DNA of 64,000 nt. It comes from Blepharisma stoltei ATCC 30299. Its lineage: Eukaryota; Protista; Ciliophora. Every line of letters begins with the position of its first letter. Within the stretch, counting starts at the first letter, position 1. Location: positions 372,001 through 436,000 of the forward strand of contig CBFDEM010000041.1 of NCBI GenBank assembly GCA_965603825.1, read 5' to 3'. Shown here piece by piece: positions 51,438-59,408 of this stretch. Position numbers and translations under genes: made by a program. The notes under the pieces were generated by a model. It did no database searches and was not told the origin of the DNA. It saw nothing but the letters and a program-made list of their open reading frames with translations.

Positions 51438-54297
51438 ATGATTAAATATTGACTGTTTTTGGTCTTTATTGGAATTTCCTTTGCCGTAAGAAGGCATGAA
51501 TTTAAAACCTGTGAGCATTCAAGTTTCTGTGTAAGAAATCTTCACTTACATCCCAAGCTAATTTAAATGAGCACTTCTCAGTTAAGGCATCAATTATAAA
51601 AGTTATTTAAGGCTATTGCTATCAAAATTAAGTCCAAAAAAGATTTGTTTATTATTAAACGGAAGGGTAGCAAAAAACAATAGCAGGGTTAAAAGTGAAG
51701 GACTTAGATTTAGCATTGACTATGAAATTAAAGAAGGAACAGTGTCGCGGATTTCTGGAGGAATTTCCTTTGAAATTAGTAGTGTTCATGAAAAAGATTC
51801 TTTTCTTAAAGGAGAAGCTATCATGTATACAAATGGCGCACTCCATGTATACATTGATGAAATTTCCCCAATCCATAAGCGATTCAAAACTCCTCAAGAA
51901 GATTTAATCAACGAAAAAGCTATCAATAAGGTCCCAAATCAGCATGTAAAAATCGAAGCAGACAAAATAATATGGGAATTAGGGAAAATCCGGTATGTTT
52001 TAAAAATCAGTAAGTTTATGATTGAAGGATTTTATGGAAAAGATCTCACAATCATCGCGAATAAAAATTCTTTCATGAATTTTGAGAGATACCGAAATAA
52101 GAATGTGGATTTAAAGCCGAAAAATCAATCAAAAGATATAAGCAAGCCTATAAAGATTTTAGATGCCACAGGCGCATACATTGAGAAAAATGGAAATCTA
52201 GAGACTCAGCCAAACCTTTGAAACGAAAATTTCAAACAATTTAATGATAAAAAGCAATTCGGGCCTAGTAGTATTGCTTTAGATTTTACATTTGTAAATT
52301 CAACTCATATTTTTGGGATTCCTGAGCATGCTGACTCTTTAGCATTGAAAGATACAGTAAAATCGGAGCCCTATCGATTATATAACTTAGATGTATTTGA
52401 GTATGAGTTAAATGAAAGAATGGCATTATATGGGTCAATTCCTTTTATTTTATCAAGAACAATTAAAAAATTTTCAAGTGGGGTGTTTTGGTCAAATCCT
52501 TCGGAAACTTATATAGATATTAATAGCCAAAATAATGATAAAATTACCCACTGAATTTCAGAAGCAGGAGTATTAGAATTTTATTTATTCCAAGACGAGT
52601 CACCTTTAAAGATTATTGAGTCCTTTACACTCTTAACTGGGCCTCCCCAGCTTCCTCCACTGTTTTCACTAGGCTATCACCAAAGCCGCTGAAACTATAA
52701 CTCAGAAAAAGATCTCTTAGATGTAGCAGATGGTTTCAATAAGTATCAAATCCCTGTTGATGTTTTTTGGCTTGATATTGAGCATACCCCAGAGCGAACT
52801 TACTTCAAATGAGATTACAGAAACTTTCCAACTCCAACAGAAATGCAAAAAAAGCTTGAAAGCATGAACAAAAAACTAGTAACCATTGTAGACCCACATA
52901 TGAAAAGAAGTGACAGCTATTTCGTCCACAAAGAAATGCAAAGCAAAGGCTACTACGTAAAAACTGATAAAGGCTATGACTTTGAAGGACATTGCTGGCC
53001 TGGCTCTTCATCATGGCCAGATTTTACTAGGCCAGAGGTTAGGGATTATTGGAGCTCCCTATTTGATTTTTCTAAATATAAAGATTCGACTGAAATTTTG
53101 TTTGTGTGGAATGATATGAATGAGCCTTCTGTATTTTCAGGGCCTGAAATCACCATGCCCAAAGATAATTTCCATGGAAACTATGAGCATAGAGAAGTTC
53201 ATAATATTTATGGCCTTTACATGCAAAGAGCTACTAGCGAAGGGCTGGTTAAAAGACGATTGGGAGGCTATAGACCTTTTGTGCTTTCTAGAGCATTTTA
53301 CGCAGGAGTGCAGAAATATGGAGCTATATGAACTGGAGATAATAATTCTAAGTGGAGCCATTTGGAATATTCTATGCCAATGTGCTTAAGTATTGCTGTA
53401 GCTGGGCTAAGCTTTTGCGGAGCTGATGTCGGAGGGTTTTTTGGAAATCCTGATACCAATTTGTTAGTTAGATGGTATCAGCTCGGAGCTTATATGCCAT
53501 TTTTTAGAGGGCATTCTCATATAGAAACTCGAAGAAGAGAACCATGGCTGTATAATGAACCTTATTTATCACAAATTAGGCAAGCCATAAATGAGCGATA
53601 TTCTTTATTGCCTTATTGGTATACTTTATTTTATATATATCATATAAAAGGGACACCTATAATTAGGCCAATGTTTGTTGAATATCCAAATGATAATATA
53701 GCAGCAGACTTAGATAAGCAGTTCCATGTAGGGCCTGGCCTACTTGTTGCTGGCATTACAATGCCAAATCAACAAGAAATTCCAATTTATTTGCCAGAGG
53801 CTATATGGTATGATTACCACACTTTTCAAAAAATAAATGAAAATGGAGCTATTAGCTATAAAACTAATGAGAACTGGGTTCCTGTATTTATTAAAGGCGG
53901 AAATGTCATAATAAGATATGAAAAAGCCAAAATGAGCACAAGTGATATGAAATCAGATCCAATAAGTATCATAATAGTTTTGAATAAAGAAAAGAAGGCA
54001 AAAGGAATGATTTATTTAGATGATACAGAAACATTTAAGTACCAATCGGGGGAATTTGTTTATGCTGAAATTGAATTTAAGGAAAATTCTATTAGATATA
54101 AGATACTAAATCAGATGAATGCGAATATTAGTGTAGGAAAAATAACTGTGCTTGGACTTGATTTTGTACCAAAAGTAGTTGCTCTAGAAAATTCAAGTGA
54201 ACTATTTACACTAGGATACTATGTGAAAGAAGAAAGTTTGATAATAAGTGAAGTTCCTGCTAAAATTTCTGAAGAATGGACTATCTATCTAAGTTAA
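51438..54297 (+). CDS. GANAB: Glucosidase II alpha subunit (GH31); 5' region interrupted
   Basis: Signal peptide + FKTCEHSSFC from ATG 51438. Main frame has GIPEHA, PYRLYNLDVFEY, GYHQSR-W-NY, WLDIEH, WNDMNEPSVF, AI-W-TGDN, GADVGGFFGNP. There is a frame break with stops at about 51540-51600. Confidence 0.88.
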
Positions 54298-54779
54298 TTA
54301 CTCAAACACATTTATTATTAAATTGCATCTTATATTAATAATTCATAGTTTGATTGCTCCAGATCAACCAAATTTTATTAAAAAGACTGTATTGAGAATG
54401 TTTCGAGCTTATAATTCAAATTTAAATTGAAATTTATAAAAATCATTTATTTTTATAAAAATAATGTGAATTAATTTTGACGAGCATTTAATTTTTTTAA
54501 TCATCTAAACTCCAATTCATTAAATAAAAATCTAATTTTTCAGTCGACGAAAGTACTTTATAACTTAAGGTAGCTTTTCTCTTAAATCTGTTTTGCATTT
54601 TAAAAATATATTTGAAGATGCAAATAAATGAAATTGAAAATATAAATAATATTAAATTGTTTAAATATATAACTTTATCAGAAAACTCAAAGGCTTAAAT
54701 TTTTGTTTTAAAAAAATATATTTCATAACCTTATTCTTTATGTTGAATTACCTGAAAATTCATTTGACTTTTTAAATAT

Positions 54780-57700
54780 ATGAAGACTTTTTCTAAGGAG
54801 AGTTTAGTCATAAACCTTTCAAAACAAGTTGAATTTTCCACTGGAAAATCAGATCCATCATCCCATTCTTTAAATGATCAAGCATCAAAGAAAACGAGCC
54901 CCAAAGCATGCACTCCATGCATTTGTGGCTGCAATTCACCAATGCTTATGGGCAAAAGGAATCCAAACCTACGCTTTAGTAGCCCAAAAGAAAATTTTTT
55001 AGTTCTTTTGCAGTGATTCTTCGAAGAATTTAAGACATCAAAGTTCAGTTTACAAGTAATTCCAGATTCCAATTATGACATATATGACCTTTTTCATTGT
55101 ATATTGAAAGTAAGAAAGCACTTCGGAAGAATTAGTTGGCGAGCAGTTGGAAAAGTTCTGAGTCCAATCAACTCATGTCGGGAATCCAGACATGCTTTAA
55201 AAGCCTTTTATAAAAAATATTTGTCCGACTTCGAGGAATGAATTTATGAAAAAGGTCCAGTCACAGTAGGCTGCATAGACACCGAAATTATAGTGACGAT
55301 ACTAAAAGACTTTATCCCGAAACATCATATAGATAAGCAAGAGCTGGCTTCTAATGAAATCGAAAGCGCGATCACTAGTGATACGAACCATGAGGAATCT
55401 TCTGAAATAATCTCTCAAGAAGTTGTTGACACCGTTGAAGATCTAATTAAGGGAGCTGCAAAAATTATAGAGCAAGAAGGAGCTGAGAAAGCAATGAAGC
55501 AAAATATTTTTATTAAAGATAACAAACAAGATGAAAGCAAAATTGAAGAAAAACCACAAATAAGGATAAGTGAAGATGAGTGTGAAGAAGAAGTTTTGCA
55601 TAAAAAGAGAAAAATTGTGAATTATGAAGATCTTCCTGATATAAATGCAGCAAACGAATTTCCAATTTTTATTGTGCAAAAGATTGAGGTCAAAGAAGAA
55701 AAAAGAAAACTGAAGAAAAGCAAACCTAAAAGAGAAAATAATCAAGAGAAGGTAGAAGAAGAGAAAACAAAGCATGAGGCCAAAGAGAAAATTAATCAAA
55801 AAGAGTCTGTACCTAAAGAAGAAAGCCCAAAAAATGAAATTCTTAAAAAACCTAAAAAATCTGAAGAAATTAATATCTCTAATCCCATGACACCTGAATT
55901 TCGCAGCAAAAACCCCACAGATCTTGGCTACCGTACAAATTTCATCAGTCGCTATCTTCCAATAGAAATGCAAGAAAGCCATAAGCTCCAAGAAGACCTT
56001 TTAAACCAAGATAATCCTCAAAAACCTGAAAAAGAATCCAAGGCTCATTTCATCCGCAAAAAACAATCAGCGGCCAACATCAAGAGAAGCTGTGGAGTGA
56101 CCTATGTTCTTCCCACCGAAAGCACACAAACTGGAGTTTCTGATCAATTTGCCCCTCTGCCCCCACTTGCTTTTCAAGTAGGCACAGTAGATAGGATAAT
56201 CCCTTCTGAGGAAAGGGAAAAATATTTTACTATGTCTCGTGAATTAATAAAACATCTTTTTGAAAACCAAGGGGTTGTAAGGGTGACGATACAAAAAAAT
56301 TATGGAGAAACAGACTTGAAAAAATATGTCTTAGGCGAAATGGATGATGGGGATGAAGTTTTAGTTGAAGATATGAAAATCATGTGGAGAATATTGGGAA
56401 AAGATAATTTCGTGGTTATTCATTTGCAAATGGATGAAAAAACACTACTAGCTCCTACTCTTCCAGGCAATAGAGGAGATGTGATGATCGGATTTCTAGT
56501 AAAAAAAGGCCTCTGTGGGATGAAGTCTGTTAAAAAGTGCCTAGGGCTTGATGAGCTTGAGACCGACCCGTTAAATACTTATGCAACGCAAATTCGGCTA
56601 GAATTATATCTGCAAAAAAAATCGTGAAAAATTGCAATACCTCATGCCAGAAAGCTCTTATGCTCATTTATATATGAATTTGAAGCCTATATTCAGCGAT
56701 TTCTACTAGATTGAAATGCAGAACGCGAAAAGTTCTTTGTCACTAAAGTACTAGAGCCTAAGCAAGGAATATTTTTATGAAAAAAATCATGCAGCTGTCC
56801 TTTATCTCCTCTCCACACCAGCCCTACATCCTCCTGATCTCCTTCATCTTCCTGAATTCTGCCAAATTCTCGCTCCTGTCCTATATGTAGTTCCTTCACA
56901 ACAGAACCTTTATATACCTACGAAAATGGCCTTTCCAGTCTCTTAGACTCGAAAAATCCTCCTAATTGATTTTATTTAATAAATACCCGAGATTCCTTTT
57001 CTTATGATCTTCATGTCAAAAAGTCTACTATCAGATGAAATGATAGAAATATCATTAAGCAAGAGTATTACTTTAGGAAAAATGATTTGCCATCAAACTA
57101 TCATGATTGAGAAAAATGGCTTGAAGGAGACTATGTAAGGGCTGGCATTGTCACTTACCAAGGAATTTTTAGTCAAGATGAACTGTTAAAACTTGAAGAA
57201 AAAGCAAGAGGCACTGAACAAGATTTTCGAAATGGCCAATTTTTAATTAATACTGCGCAGCCTTCATATGGTGCTGGAGGGGTAATAAAAAGGACAAAGT
57301 TTTTCTTTGGGACTCGTTATATGTGGACGGCTACACAATTAGCAGAAAAGCAGTCTCGAGTAGCAGCTGGGGTAAGGGTAGACGTGAGTGATACCCCATA
57401 TTGAATGAAAAAAGAAATTTTAGACCCATTGGTGGACTCAGGAATTATTGAAAAGAATTTTATAAATTCAATTGCTATGAATATTTATCATGATGGAAAA
57501 GAAGGCTTAGCCCAGCACTTTGATGATGCTGTTAGGTTTAAACAGCCAATATATACTGTAAAATTAGGGAGTGACGCGAGGCTTTCATTTGGAAGTCAAT
57601 TTTATGGGTATTTAAATGGAGCTTTTTGCATTCCATGCCCGAGAGGGGTGGTTTGTGTTATGGAAGAATTCAGTTATGCAGCTAATTCAGCAAAGCATTG

Positions 57701-57938
57701 CGTGAGGCCTTGCGATATGTCTGGAAGATCAATCACACTAATTTTAAGGCAAATACATCCATTTATAATGGAAGAAGCAAGAAAATATGACGCTGAAATC
57801 GATTTACCGACGTGATTTTCGACGCTTTCACTAGATGATGACTCAGTGCCATATTATAAGCAAAAGGAAATGGAAGCGAAATTGCTTATGAAAGAAGAAA
57901 AAGAAGCTGGAAAAAAACTGTCTTCTAATAGCTATTAA
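54780..57938 (+). CDS. ARID domain + ALKBH5-type 2OG-Fe(II) dioxygenase fusion (1052 aa)
   Basis: One frame with no TAA/TAG from ATG 54780 to TAA 57936-57938, containing 12 TGAs. ARID-like DIYDLFHCI...SWRAVGKVL...LKAFYKKYLSDFE; ALKBH5-like RTKFFFG, FINSIAMNIY, QHFDD, F.QPI, SDARLSFG, YAANSAKHCVRP.D...R...ILR. Confidence 0.88.
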
Positions 57939-57995
57939 GTAAAATATTATCTCAATGTAGTTAACATTCACTTTCTTATTAATTTCACCAGAAAT

Positions 57996-58616
57996 ATGTC
58001 AGGCCAGTTCAGTCTTGAAAAACTATTCGAACATCTCGAAGGCGCAGGAGCAAACCTTGACGATATTAATTACCTTGATTTTGCTGATCTGATGATTGAT
58101 TTTACCCACACTTTTTCATTCATTGGAAAAGTAGTATCACTCGCCTTTTCTGACATCGCTACTAAGGCTAAATATTTGAAAAAGAATTTCAAAAGTACAA
58201 GCTTCACAGGATTACAAAGCATGATCTTAGATGAAATTAAATGCGGAACTGTCAGAAAGGAAGGAAAGCGTCCATCAACTGCGATCACTGTGCTAAAGCT
58301 GATGTGGTTTTCAGATTTTTTAAGGCAGATTGTGTTACATTTAACAACCCAGCTCCATTGGAAACTCTCGAAATGCGTGAAAGTTGCTTATAAAGAGACG
58401 CTATCAAAACATCATCCTTGGACATTCAGACTTGCAGCAAAAATTGGAATTAAGATTTTACCTAGCAGGCAGGAGTATATGAATAAACTTTTTGGGAATA
58501 TTCCTGTCGAAAAACAATTGGAATTGTTTAGGCATTTGCTTGAGCTTTCAGATCCACTGAGAGACACTCTTTGGGGATTTTATAACGAAAATAACCTGGC
58601 AAATATTGTTAAATAA
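57996..58616 (+). CDS. GLTP/ACD11-like lipid transfer protein, copy 1
   Basis: AFSDI..K, STAITVLKLMWF.DFL, AYKETLSKHHPW, LPSRQE. Confidence 0.88.
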   Translation: MSGQFSLEKLFEHLEGAGANLDDINYLDFADLMIDFTHTFSFIGKVVSLAFSDIATKAKYLKKNFKSTSFTGLQSMILDEIKCGTVRKEGKRPSTAITVLKLMWFSDFLRQIVLHLTTQLHWKLSKCVKVAYKETLSKHHPWTFRLAAKIGIKILPSRQEYMNKLFGNIPVEKQLELFRHLLELSDPLRDTLWGFYNENNLANIVK

Positions 58617-58784
58617 ATATATTTGTATTTAAATGGTAAAATTTCAAGGACATTCTGTTAGCAGAAAAAGACAAAACTATAATAAATATATTTGAAACTG
58701 CAGGAGAGCATATATTTTAATTATAACGATTTTTTTACACATGTTTATTGTAAATTTTTTATTGGCTTTAAAACGGTGATAATT

Positions 58785-59408
58785 ATGGTATCACAATTCG
58801 ATATCAACAAGCTCTTCGAGCATTTGGAGCAAGCAGCAGTAAATCTTGATGAAATTCACTACCTTCATTTTGCTGATGCAATGCTTGAGTTTTCAAACTC
58901 ATTTGCGTTTTTAGGAAGAGCTTTGTCCATGGCATTTTCTGATATCACATCAAAAGCAGCGATAATAAAAAATAATTTCCAAGGCTCCCAATTCACAGGC
59001 TTACAAAGCATGATTTCAGACGAAATTCGAAGAGGAGTTGAAAGGTTTCACCAGGACGACCACCATGCGTCTACAGCAAGAACAATATTGAGATTAATGT
59101 GGTTTTTTGATTTCCTTAGACAACTTATAATCAATTTCAGCACACATCTTGATTGGAAAATGTCAAAATGCGTCTCTGAAGCGTATGATGATGCTTTTGG
59201 GCCCCATCATCCATGGCCTGTAAGAATGGCAGCAAAAGTTGGAATTAAAACTGTACCTAATAGAGAAGAGTATGGAAGAAGATTGTTGGGGGATATTTCT
59301 TTAGAAAGACAATTGGAGCTTTTTAATAGAATGCTTGAGCTCTCAAGTCCAATTAGAGAAGCGCTTTGGAACTTTTATAAGAGAAATAACCTTACTGAGC
59401 TTCCTTAG
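58785..59408 (+). CDS. GLTP/ACD11-like lipid transfer protein, copy 2
   Basis: ATG 58785; AFSDITSK, STARTILRLMWF, AYDDAFGPHHPWPVRMA; colinear with copy 1. Confidence 0.9.
   Translation: MVSQFDINKLFEHLEQAAVNLDEIHYLHFADAMLEFSNSFAFLGRALSMAFSDITSKAAIIKNNFQGSQFTGLQSMISDEIRRGVERFHQDDHHASTARTILRLMWFFDFLRQLIINFSTHLDWKMSKCVSEAYDDAFGPHHPWPVRMAAKVGIKTVPNREEYGRRLLGDISLERQLELFNRMLELSSPIREALWNFYKRNNLTELP

Follow-up and report, generated by a model that had tools for sequence, protein, structure and literature searches.

Based on our analysis of a 64,000-nucleotide stretch of DNA from Blepharisma stoltei ATCC 30299 (GenBank assembly GCA_965603825.1, contig CBFDEM010000041.1, positions 372,001 to 436,000 of the forward strand; the whole stretch is called the window below, and its own numbering is used), we propose a function for the gene at 54780 to 57938, which combines an AT-rich interaction domain (ARID) with a dioxygenase domain of the ALKBH5 type. 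With moderate confidence, and from sequence comparisons, we propose that its product belongs to the ciliate subclade of DMT3 (TtALKBH5) and is a nuclear Fe(II)/2-oxoglutarate (2OG) dioxygenase, most likely one that takes N6-methyl groups off adenines at 6mApT sites in double-stranded macronuclear DNA. DNA N6-methyladenine (6mA) is the substrate that we infer from the company the protein keeps among its relatives and from the residues around its active site. The features of the gene, with residues numbered on the translated protein and model confidence given as the predicted local distance difference test (pLDDT), are as follows:

54706..57955, plus strand: transcription unit, with gapless, joint-free contig cover in four probable RNA runs
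54780..57938, plus strand: coding sequence of 1052 codons and a TAA, with 12 TGA codons read as tryptophan and no intron
54918..54932, plus strand: C47-x-C49-G-C51 motif shortly before the ARID, near-invariant in the ARID-bearing clade
54987..55235, plus strand: ARID/BRIGHT domain, residues 70-152, found with PF01388 and a family profile
55305..55931, plus strand: variable charged linker, residues 176-384, rich in insertions and deletions and poorly conserved, with KKRK-type basic runs at residues 275, 312 and 356
55932..56084, plus strand: motifs NPMT.EFR...GY.T.F...YLPIEMQ and ESK.HFIRKKQSA.NIKR ahead of the middle domain, recognised by family conservation
56085..56747, plus strand: alpha+beta middle domain, residues ~436-656 (~220 residues), conserved and modelled
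56790..56888, plus strand: C671-x-C673 ... W686 ... C700-x-x-C703 cluster, in the ARID-bearing clade only, pLDDT 85-95
56952..57146, plus strand: beta-rich segment SK.PPNWFYLINTRDSFSYDL, residues 725-789, conserved, preceding the catalytic core
57147..57794, plus strand: ALKBH5-clade Fe(II)/2OG dioxygenase domain, residues 790-1005
57795..57935, plus strand: C-terminal tail with the motif EA..YD.E.DLPTWFSTLS, common to other ciliate DMT3 homologs

The frame from 54780 to 57938 on the plus strand comprises 1053 codons counting the terminal TAA, and all 12 internal stops are TGA (codons 79, 154, 616, 645, 667, 686, 692, 730, 753, 777, 875 and 1012). TAA and TAG are absent from the 1052 codons, that is, from more than 3 kb of DNA with ~33% GC, for which the chance estimate is ~1e-25; the frame is therefore not explicable by chance. 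In B. stoltei ATCC 30299, whose macronuclear assembly amounts to 41 Mbp in 64 telomere-to-telomere contigs with 66% AT, UGA is reassigned to tryptophan and introns are 15-16 bp long (PMC9942806). Tryptophan stands opposite 10 of the 12 TGAs in a paralog of the gene (7 times as TGG and 3 times as TGA), and 7 of the 12 lie at columns with 85-100% tryptophan in an alignment of 21 family proteins (16-20 homologs per column). The gene is thus one uninterrupted, transcribed and selectively constrained unit of 1052 codons, read with UGA as tryptophan. A first-pass annotation of the bare sequence had already joined the three open-reading-frame fragments into this single frame, and in that it was right. 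It had also called the gene hidden and expected standard-code annotation to miss it, but the gene is neither hidden nor missed: the translation with genetic code table 4 is letter for letter the public protein P0169 (1052 residues), and the ESM Atlas holds the same sequence, so the gene had already been called correctly in public data. Our search queries were the pieces between TGAs, the paralog's uninterrupted 674-residue piece and then P0169; the TGA-bounded pieces gave weak Pfam matches, and clear results came from the other two queries.

The paralog is full-length and lies at G000:C9:399857-403105 (L003:2358-5606, plus strand), where G000 is the genome of 41,464,486 bases in 64 contigs that all our genome-wide counts cover. 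It has 1082 codons and 67% amino acid identity to the window gene, with the same layout of ARID, middle domain and ALKBH5 domain, and its flanks are non-homologous to those of the window gene. The ratio of nonsynonymous to synonymous substitution rates (dN/dS) between the two is 0.14 overall, with synonymous sites near saturation. By region it is 0.19 in the charged linker, which has the highest dN, 0.18 in the ARID region, 0.12 in the middle domain, 0.10 in the beta-rich segment and 0.03 in the catalytic domain. Both genes are maintained. Of additional note, the two differ in how they write tryptophan: 12 of the 16 tryptophan codons are TGA in the window gene, and only 3 of 14 in the paralog.

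Transcription of the gene as one unit is indicated by contigs from four runs of one study, which lie at 54706-55083, 55054-55129, 55100-57497, 57468-57511 and 57482-57909 or 57482-57955 and overlap by 30 nucleotides. In all four runs the contigs are at least 99% identical to the gene, with no joint and no indel, and the cover spans all 12 TGAs, reaching from ~74 nucleotides before the ATG to ~17 nucleotides past the stop. The RNA nature of the four runs is a tool's guess, and the cover is contig evidence rather than single-molecule evidence. The holes in the cover at 54348-54534 and 57956-58003, present in all four runs, together with the strong differences in depth among neighbouring genes, fit an RNA rather than a DNA origin of the runs. 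Only two stretches of 31 nucleotides or more are identical in the paralog, and they are precisely the two short contigs, 55054-55129 and 57468-57511; since the contig breaks coincide with them, the breaks are branch points of the assembly graph and not transcript ends or introns. Hidden micro-introns were considered as well, since a few GT..AG strings, 15-18 nucleotides long, turned up in a pattern scan, among them one at 55099-55114 near a contig break. We rejected splicing because the contigs are jointless, the breaks are the paralog-identical stretches and the depth of the shared contig exceeds that of its flanks. A separate observation concerns the 5' contig (54706-55083), whose k-mer depth, a measure not reliable for ranking contigs, is 2.5-5 times that of the main contig (55100-57497) in all four runs. 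Sharing with the paralog accounts for the 76-nucleotide contig only, and coverage bias towards the 5' end or a short 5' transcript might explain the excess beyond it.

The C-terminal part of the protein carries the assignment to an enzyme family. When the whole protein was compared with solved structures, ALKBH5 was the sole match at E<=1 (E 1.5e-19, residues 762-991); a 136-residue piece between two TGAs matched ALKBH5 in the Protein Data Bank (PDB) with E 1.7e-13, and the family profile did so with 1e-64, followed by ALKBH8 at 1.7e-4. The generic Pfam model 2OG-FeII_Oxy_2 gave 17-19 bits only, which is usual for the distance of this clade from that model. Aligned to human ALKBH5, whose numbering we read off the alignment and from the residues numbered in PMC12974511, the iron triad H913, D915 and H973 corresponds to H204, D206 and H266 and is intact; N901 and Y903 correspond to N193 and Y195; S936, S939 and C974 to C227, C230 and C267; and R983, S984 and R990 to R276, R277 and R283. 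The alignments show a genuine ALKBH5-type catalytic core whose predicted metal site is intact, in agreement with the ALKBH5-like C-terminal domain of the first-pass annotation. That annotation had also reported an intact pair of 2OG-binding arginines, of which the second, R990, is there and the first is not.

Human ALKBH5 is an RNA m6A demethylase. The window protein resembles it (PDB 4NJ4, 4NRM and others) in the double-stranded beta-helix core over residues 762-991, in which HxD...H, NxY and the second arginine are kept. It is unlike human ALKBH5 in other respects: the human enzyme has 394 residues with neither an ARID nor a middle domain, and it carries Cys230 and a canonical R277, whereas the window protein has serine at both the C227 and the C230 position.

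The closest characterised relative is found in Tetrahymena, where genetic work published in 2026 identifies DMT3 (TtALKBH5) as a DNA 6mA demethylase in vivo (PMC12974511). There, 6mA rises when DMT3 is knocked out and falls when it is overexpressed, the effect on 6mA in vivo is abolished by catalytic inactivation, and the S1775C mutant is without the 6mA effect, with RNA m6A unchanged in S1775C cells. The same source states that a disulfide between C230 and C267 enforces the single-strand preference of human ALKBH5 and that a change of C230 to serine is tied to activity on double-stranded DNA, the human C230S variant gaining 6mA activity on double-stranded DNA in work that it cites. As marks of the ciliate subclade it gives great length, serine for C230 with C267 kept, and loss of the first arginine of the Rx5R motif, which is asparagine in DMT3. 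Our homolog search brought up TTHERM_00371220, a protein of 1881 residues with serine at residue 1775 within SDARLSFGSQ; since this is the serine named in PMC12974511, we took TTHERM_00371220 as DMT3.

Over residues 731-1038, the window protein and TTHERM_00371220 are 53% identical. In a maximum-likelihood (ML) tree built on 84 catalytic domains, the window gene and its paralog fall in a clade of 21 rows with a support of 100 in the SH-like approximate likelihood-ratio test (SH-aLRT), and this clade is nested in one of 36 rows (SH-aLRT 99) together with Tetrahymena, including DMT3, Paramecium and Ichthyophthirius; the green-algal, foraminiferal and animal-like sequences lie outside the 36-row clade. 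The tree search was a quick one and involved no bootstrapping; in other parts of the tree, several long branches are unreliable. The window protein is most likely the counterpart of DMT3. Beyond their common subclade, the two have an identical flip3 motif (SDARLSFGSQ), serine at the C230 and cysteine at the C267 position and a replaced first Rx5R arginine, and they share both the middle domain and the C-terminal tail DLPTW.STLS. They differ in that DMT3 has no ARID match by Pfam or by the family N-terminal profile, is without the CxC...CxxC cluster, has its middle domain split by an insertion of ~425 residues, and shows asparagine at the R277 position where the window protein has serine.

The N-terminal part provides the putative link to DNA. 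In other proteins, the ARID is a binder of AT-rich DNA. Against the curated PF01388 cut-off of 24.1 bits, the domain of the window protein taken alone scores 24.8 bits (profile positions 2-89), the TGA-bounded window piece gives a partial match of 20.7 bits, the paralog scores 26 bits, and the orthologs P0003 and P0007 score 30.1 and 31.6 bits; in all, PF01388 matches 17 of 20 family N-termini. The family N-terminal profile finds almost only ARIDs in the PDB: Drosophila Lid/KDM5 at 1.1e-6, a 1301-residue ARID protein at 1.9e-6, and further ARID4A, ARID1A/B, ARID5B, Dead ringer and JARID1A/C/D. Judged by these profile matches, the ARID of the window protein is real, and it lies where the first-pass annotation had placed an ARID-like domain (about 54990-55240). 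With the family profile, the ARID was found only in ~20 collinear homologs, and all full-length members of the 21-row clade carry it; neither this profile nor Pfam found an ARID in Tetrahymena, Paramecium, Ichthyophthirius or the other collected relatives. The clade that bears the ARID presumably represents the heterotrichs.

Two cysteine motifs accompany the ARID. In the CxCGC motif just upstream of it, C8, C10, G11 and C12 of alignment A1 are kept in at least 90% of the sequences, and this motif may bind zinc. The second, CxC...CxxC, follows the middle domain, and its C671, C673, W686, C700 and C703 are near-invariant in the ARID clade (alignment A2); in the alignment, the rows of Tetrahymena, Paramecium and the green algae are without it. 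It is probably a lineage-specific zinc site. The basic runs of the charged linker are predicted nuclear-localisation signals. In the beta-rich segment, R358, D359, S360, F361 and Y363 of alignment A2 are invariant. The charged linker and the Cys cluster (about 56787-56890) had both been noticed in the first pass, and both are borne out by the family alignments.

Several points weigh against a demethylase that is brought to chromatin by an ARID and acts on DNA. The whole window protein scores 20.1 bits against PF01388 (profile positions 2-89), below the cut-off. The first arginine of the 2OG-binding Rx5R motif is missing: Ser984 takes its place, preceded by Arg983, with R990, N901 and Y903 kept. 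No ALKBH5-clade gene was found in the genome apart from the window gene and its paralog, so RNA m6A could be the target of the pair, in place of DNA or alongside it. YTH-domain loci that pass the Pfam cut-off number at least three (G000:C21:514006-514404, C23:637687-638073 and C28:518659-519024). On the other side, at least two MT-A70 loci that pass their Pfam cut-off (G000:C23:258009-258506 and G000:C43:365955-366494, both on the minus strand) count in favour of the DNA reading as candidate methylation writers, though they are known at the level of the Pfam family and not as AMT1-like. With the YTH-domain and MT-A70 loci, parts for both a DNA 6mA and an RNA m6A system may be present. For DMT3 itself, PMC12974511 shows no activity in vitro, and the protein could not be purified.

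The alternative to be taken most seriously is that the protein demethylates m6A in RNA, as do animal ALKBH5 and plant ALKBH9B/10B, and that the ARID recruits it to chromatin with nascent transcripts as its target. The YTH-domain loci and the lack of any further ALKBH5-clade gene would suit such an enzyme; moreover, the solved relatives are all RNA demethylases, and a green-algal relative that shares the middle and catalytic domains bears the label 'RNA demethylase', which was assigned automatically. Against this, the window protein groups in the ML tree with DMT3 and not with the animal-like sequences, it has serine at the C230 position, which is tied to activity on double-stranded DNA, and RNA m6A was unchanged in the DMT3 S1775C cells (both from PMC12974511). 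Overall, we regard RNA as its proper substrate as unlikely, though by no means negligible.

The replaced arginine raises a second alternative, in which the protein is a weakened or inactive chromatin scaffold or reader that recognises methylated adenine and leaves the methyl group in place. Ser984 at the first Rx5R arginine would be in keeping with this, as would the low 2OG-FeII_Oxy_2 score of 17-19 bits. However, H913, D915, H973, N901, Y903 and R990 are all kept, and a basic residue always precedes the R277 position, namely R983 in the window protein and lysine in other ciliates. DMT3 has asparagine at that position, yet its effect on 6mA depends on catalysis (PMC12974511), and the dN/dS of 0.03 in the catalytic domain likewise speaks for an enzyme. 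We consider a loss of catalysis quite improbable. Finally, repair of DNA or RNA alkylation (1-methyladenine, 3-methylcytosine) in the manner of AlkB or ALKBH2/3, to which membership of the AlkB superfamily and an ARID that could bring a repair enzyme to DNA might point, has very little to recommend it, since the solved structures gave no match to AlkB or ALKBH1-3 but only to ALKBH5, with ALKBH8 far behind, and the protein belongs to the DMT3 clade.

A demethylase of DNA 6mA in the DMT3 clade remains the reading that we prefer, and the middle domain may be the part that suits it to this substrate. Residues ~385-790 are conserved across the family in the alignment, K435, R436, E447, S448 and Q450 being invariant. 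The stretch with the two motifs ahead of the middle domain (55932..56084) was predicted in our first structure model to be mostly disordered with one helix. A hidden Markov model (HMM) of the middle region matches DMT3 in two parts, residues 706-926 and 1352-1631 (6e-36 and 5e-19), which lie ~425 residues apart; BLAST also finds the domain in DMT3 at E 2.5e-19, and the window protein has 31% identity to DMT3 over residues 366-597. The HMM also matches proteins of Paramecium, Ichthyophthirius and many unnamed relatives and, among green algae, Chloropicon over the full length (E 2e-106) as well as Caulerpa and Bryopsis. Because it is common to DMT3, other ciliates and green algae, the middle domain has, on these profile matches, long accompanied the ALKBH5 core of protists and is no invention of the heterotrichs. 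Its conservation reaches from green algae to ciliates, and it always stands N-terminal to the ALKBH5-type core.

In the first pass this region had been described as globular and unassigned, and a conserved globular region is indeed present there. A model of residues 380-795 reached a pLDDT of 79, and one of residues 432-728, made with a broader alignment, a pLDDT of 91.8 and a predicted template modelling score (pTM) of 0.90. With these models, Foldseek found no structure in the PDB at E<=0.001, with template modelling (TM) scores of at most 0.17. VIA-align against 48,161 representative chains gave a best Z of 3.4-3.5 and none >=5, and a shape search of the ESM Atlas gave TM scores of at most 0.25; the sequence profile of the domain had no match in the PDB either. 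Since a Z of 7-8 is typical in VIA-align even of models that lack a clear match, this is an unusually blank fold result, which is not proof of a new fold.

Several candidate identities for the middle domain were discarded. Many protist homologs are said to have two AlkB-like domains (PMC12974511). A second, degenerate AlkB-like domain was rejected here, as far as these comparisons reach, because the hhalign comparison with the catalytic domain gave a probability of 0.1% and no jelly-roll enzyme appeared in the fold searches. Thymidylate synthase/dCMP hydroxymethylase and the START/Bet v1 helix-grip fold reached Z 2.4-3.5, which is too weak; MutM/Fpg, with a Foldseek TM of ~0.1, is meaningless as a match; and the one look-alike proposed by a protein language model, at 0.75, was under the noise level of that tool.

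Taking the parts together, we suggest a tentative scheme for how the protein might work. Its ALKBH5-type core would oxidatively remove the N6-methyl group from adenine at 6mApT in duplex macronuclear DNA, while the ARID, possibly with the Cys clusters, would tether the enzyme to DNA or chromatin, and the basic runs of the linker would serve nuclear import. The middle domain would help an otherwise single-strand-specific core to act on duplex DNA. A more specific version of this, which we hold to be distinctly less probable than not, is that the middle domain is a new fold through which the core recognises 6mApT sites in duplexes and flips the base out; in heterotrich-type ciliates, the ARID and the Cys clusters might then set the site on AT-rich chromatin.

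This scheme recalls fusions predicted earlier. Protist and green-algal members of the AlkBH5 clade fused to PHD fingers or AT-hooks in organisms with DNA m6A were proposed in 2015 to be DNA demethylases (Iyer, Zhang and Aravind, PMC4738411). The window protein is like them in joining an AlkBH5-clade dioxygenase to chromatin- or DNA-binding modules in an organism likely to have DNA 6mA; it is unlike them in that its module consists of an ARID and Cys clusters, unlisted for AlkB enzymes in PMC4738411. The pattern of those fusions recurs within our collection: P0017, the homolog from Caulerpa, carries NSD-type PHD fingers, and RGRP AT-hook cores occur in several ARID-clade members and in P0205. 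The KRGRP core stands ahead of the middle domain in P0004 (residue 285), P0007 (residue 438), P0172 (residue 450) and P0175 (residue 300), and near the N-terminus in P0205 (residue 56); the window protein has no AT-hook core ahead of its middle domain, and a motif search found no AT-hook in the Tetrahymena, Paramecium and Ichthyophthirius homologs.

A further likeness, by analogy only, is to the KDM5/JARID1 histone demethylases, which also pair an ARID with an Fe(II)/2OG demethylase acting on chromatin and among which the family ARID profile finds its best solved match, the ARID of Drosophila Lid/KDM5. The window protein is not a member of that group, whose catalytic family is JmjC and not AlkB, and Pfam at E<=1 found no JmjN, JmjC or PHD in P0169. 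An ARID on an AlkB enzyme is unmentioned in PMC4738411, in PMC12974511 and in the DMT3 preprint, and a literature search combining Stentor, Blepharisma or heterotrich with ALKBH5 gave no paper naming ALKBH5 among the matches listed. The ARID fusion may therefore be undescribed, as the first-pass annotation supposed, although the theme that it varies is a known one. Likewise, the chromatin-directed eraser of DNA 6mA that it proposed stands as the best reading, through the DMT3 clade and the change of C230 to serine, but the idea itself had been predicted in 2015 (PMC4738411) and was demonstrated for DMT3 in 2026.

The neighbouring genes are unrelated. Upstream, a gene for a glycosidase of glycoside hydrolase family 31 lies at 52843-54297 on the plus strand; it appears as several open-reading-frame fragments under the standard code, presumably split by TGA codons for tryptophan or by micro-introns. 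Downstream, two glycolipid-transfer-protein genes follow in tandem at 57996-58616 and 58692-59408, also on the plus strand, the first starting ~60 nucleotides past the stop of the demethylase gene.

DMT3, reported in 2026, is the first genetically supported eraser of DNA 6mA in a ciliate, and the Blepharisma-type gene bears on how enzymes of the DMT3 type are recruited to transcription start sites and how they handle duplex DNA. The Blepharisma-type protein is about half the size of DMT3, has the middle domain without the long Tetrahymena insertion and carries a recognisable DNA-binding domain; it should therefore be more tractable for biochemistry and structure work. Binding of its ARID to AT-rich DNA offers a concrete hypothesis for targeting, and the middle domain, if it is truly a new fold, would be the likeliest source of new insight.

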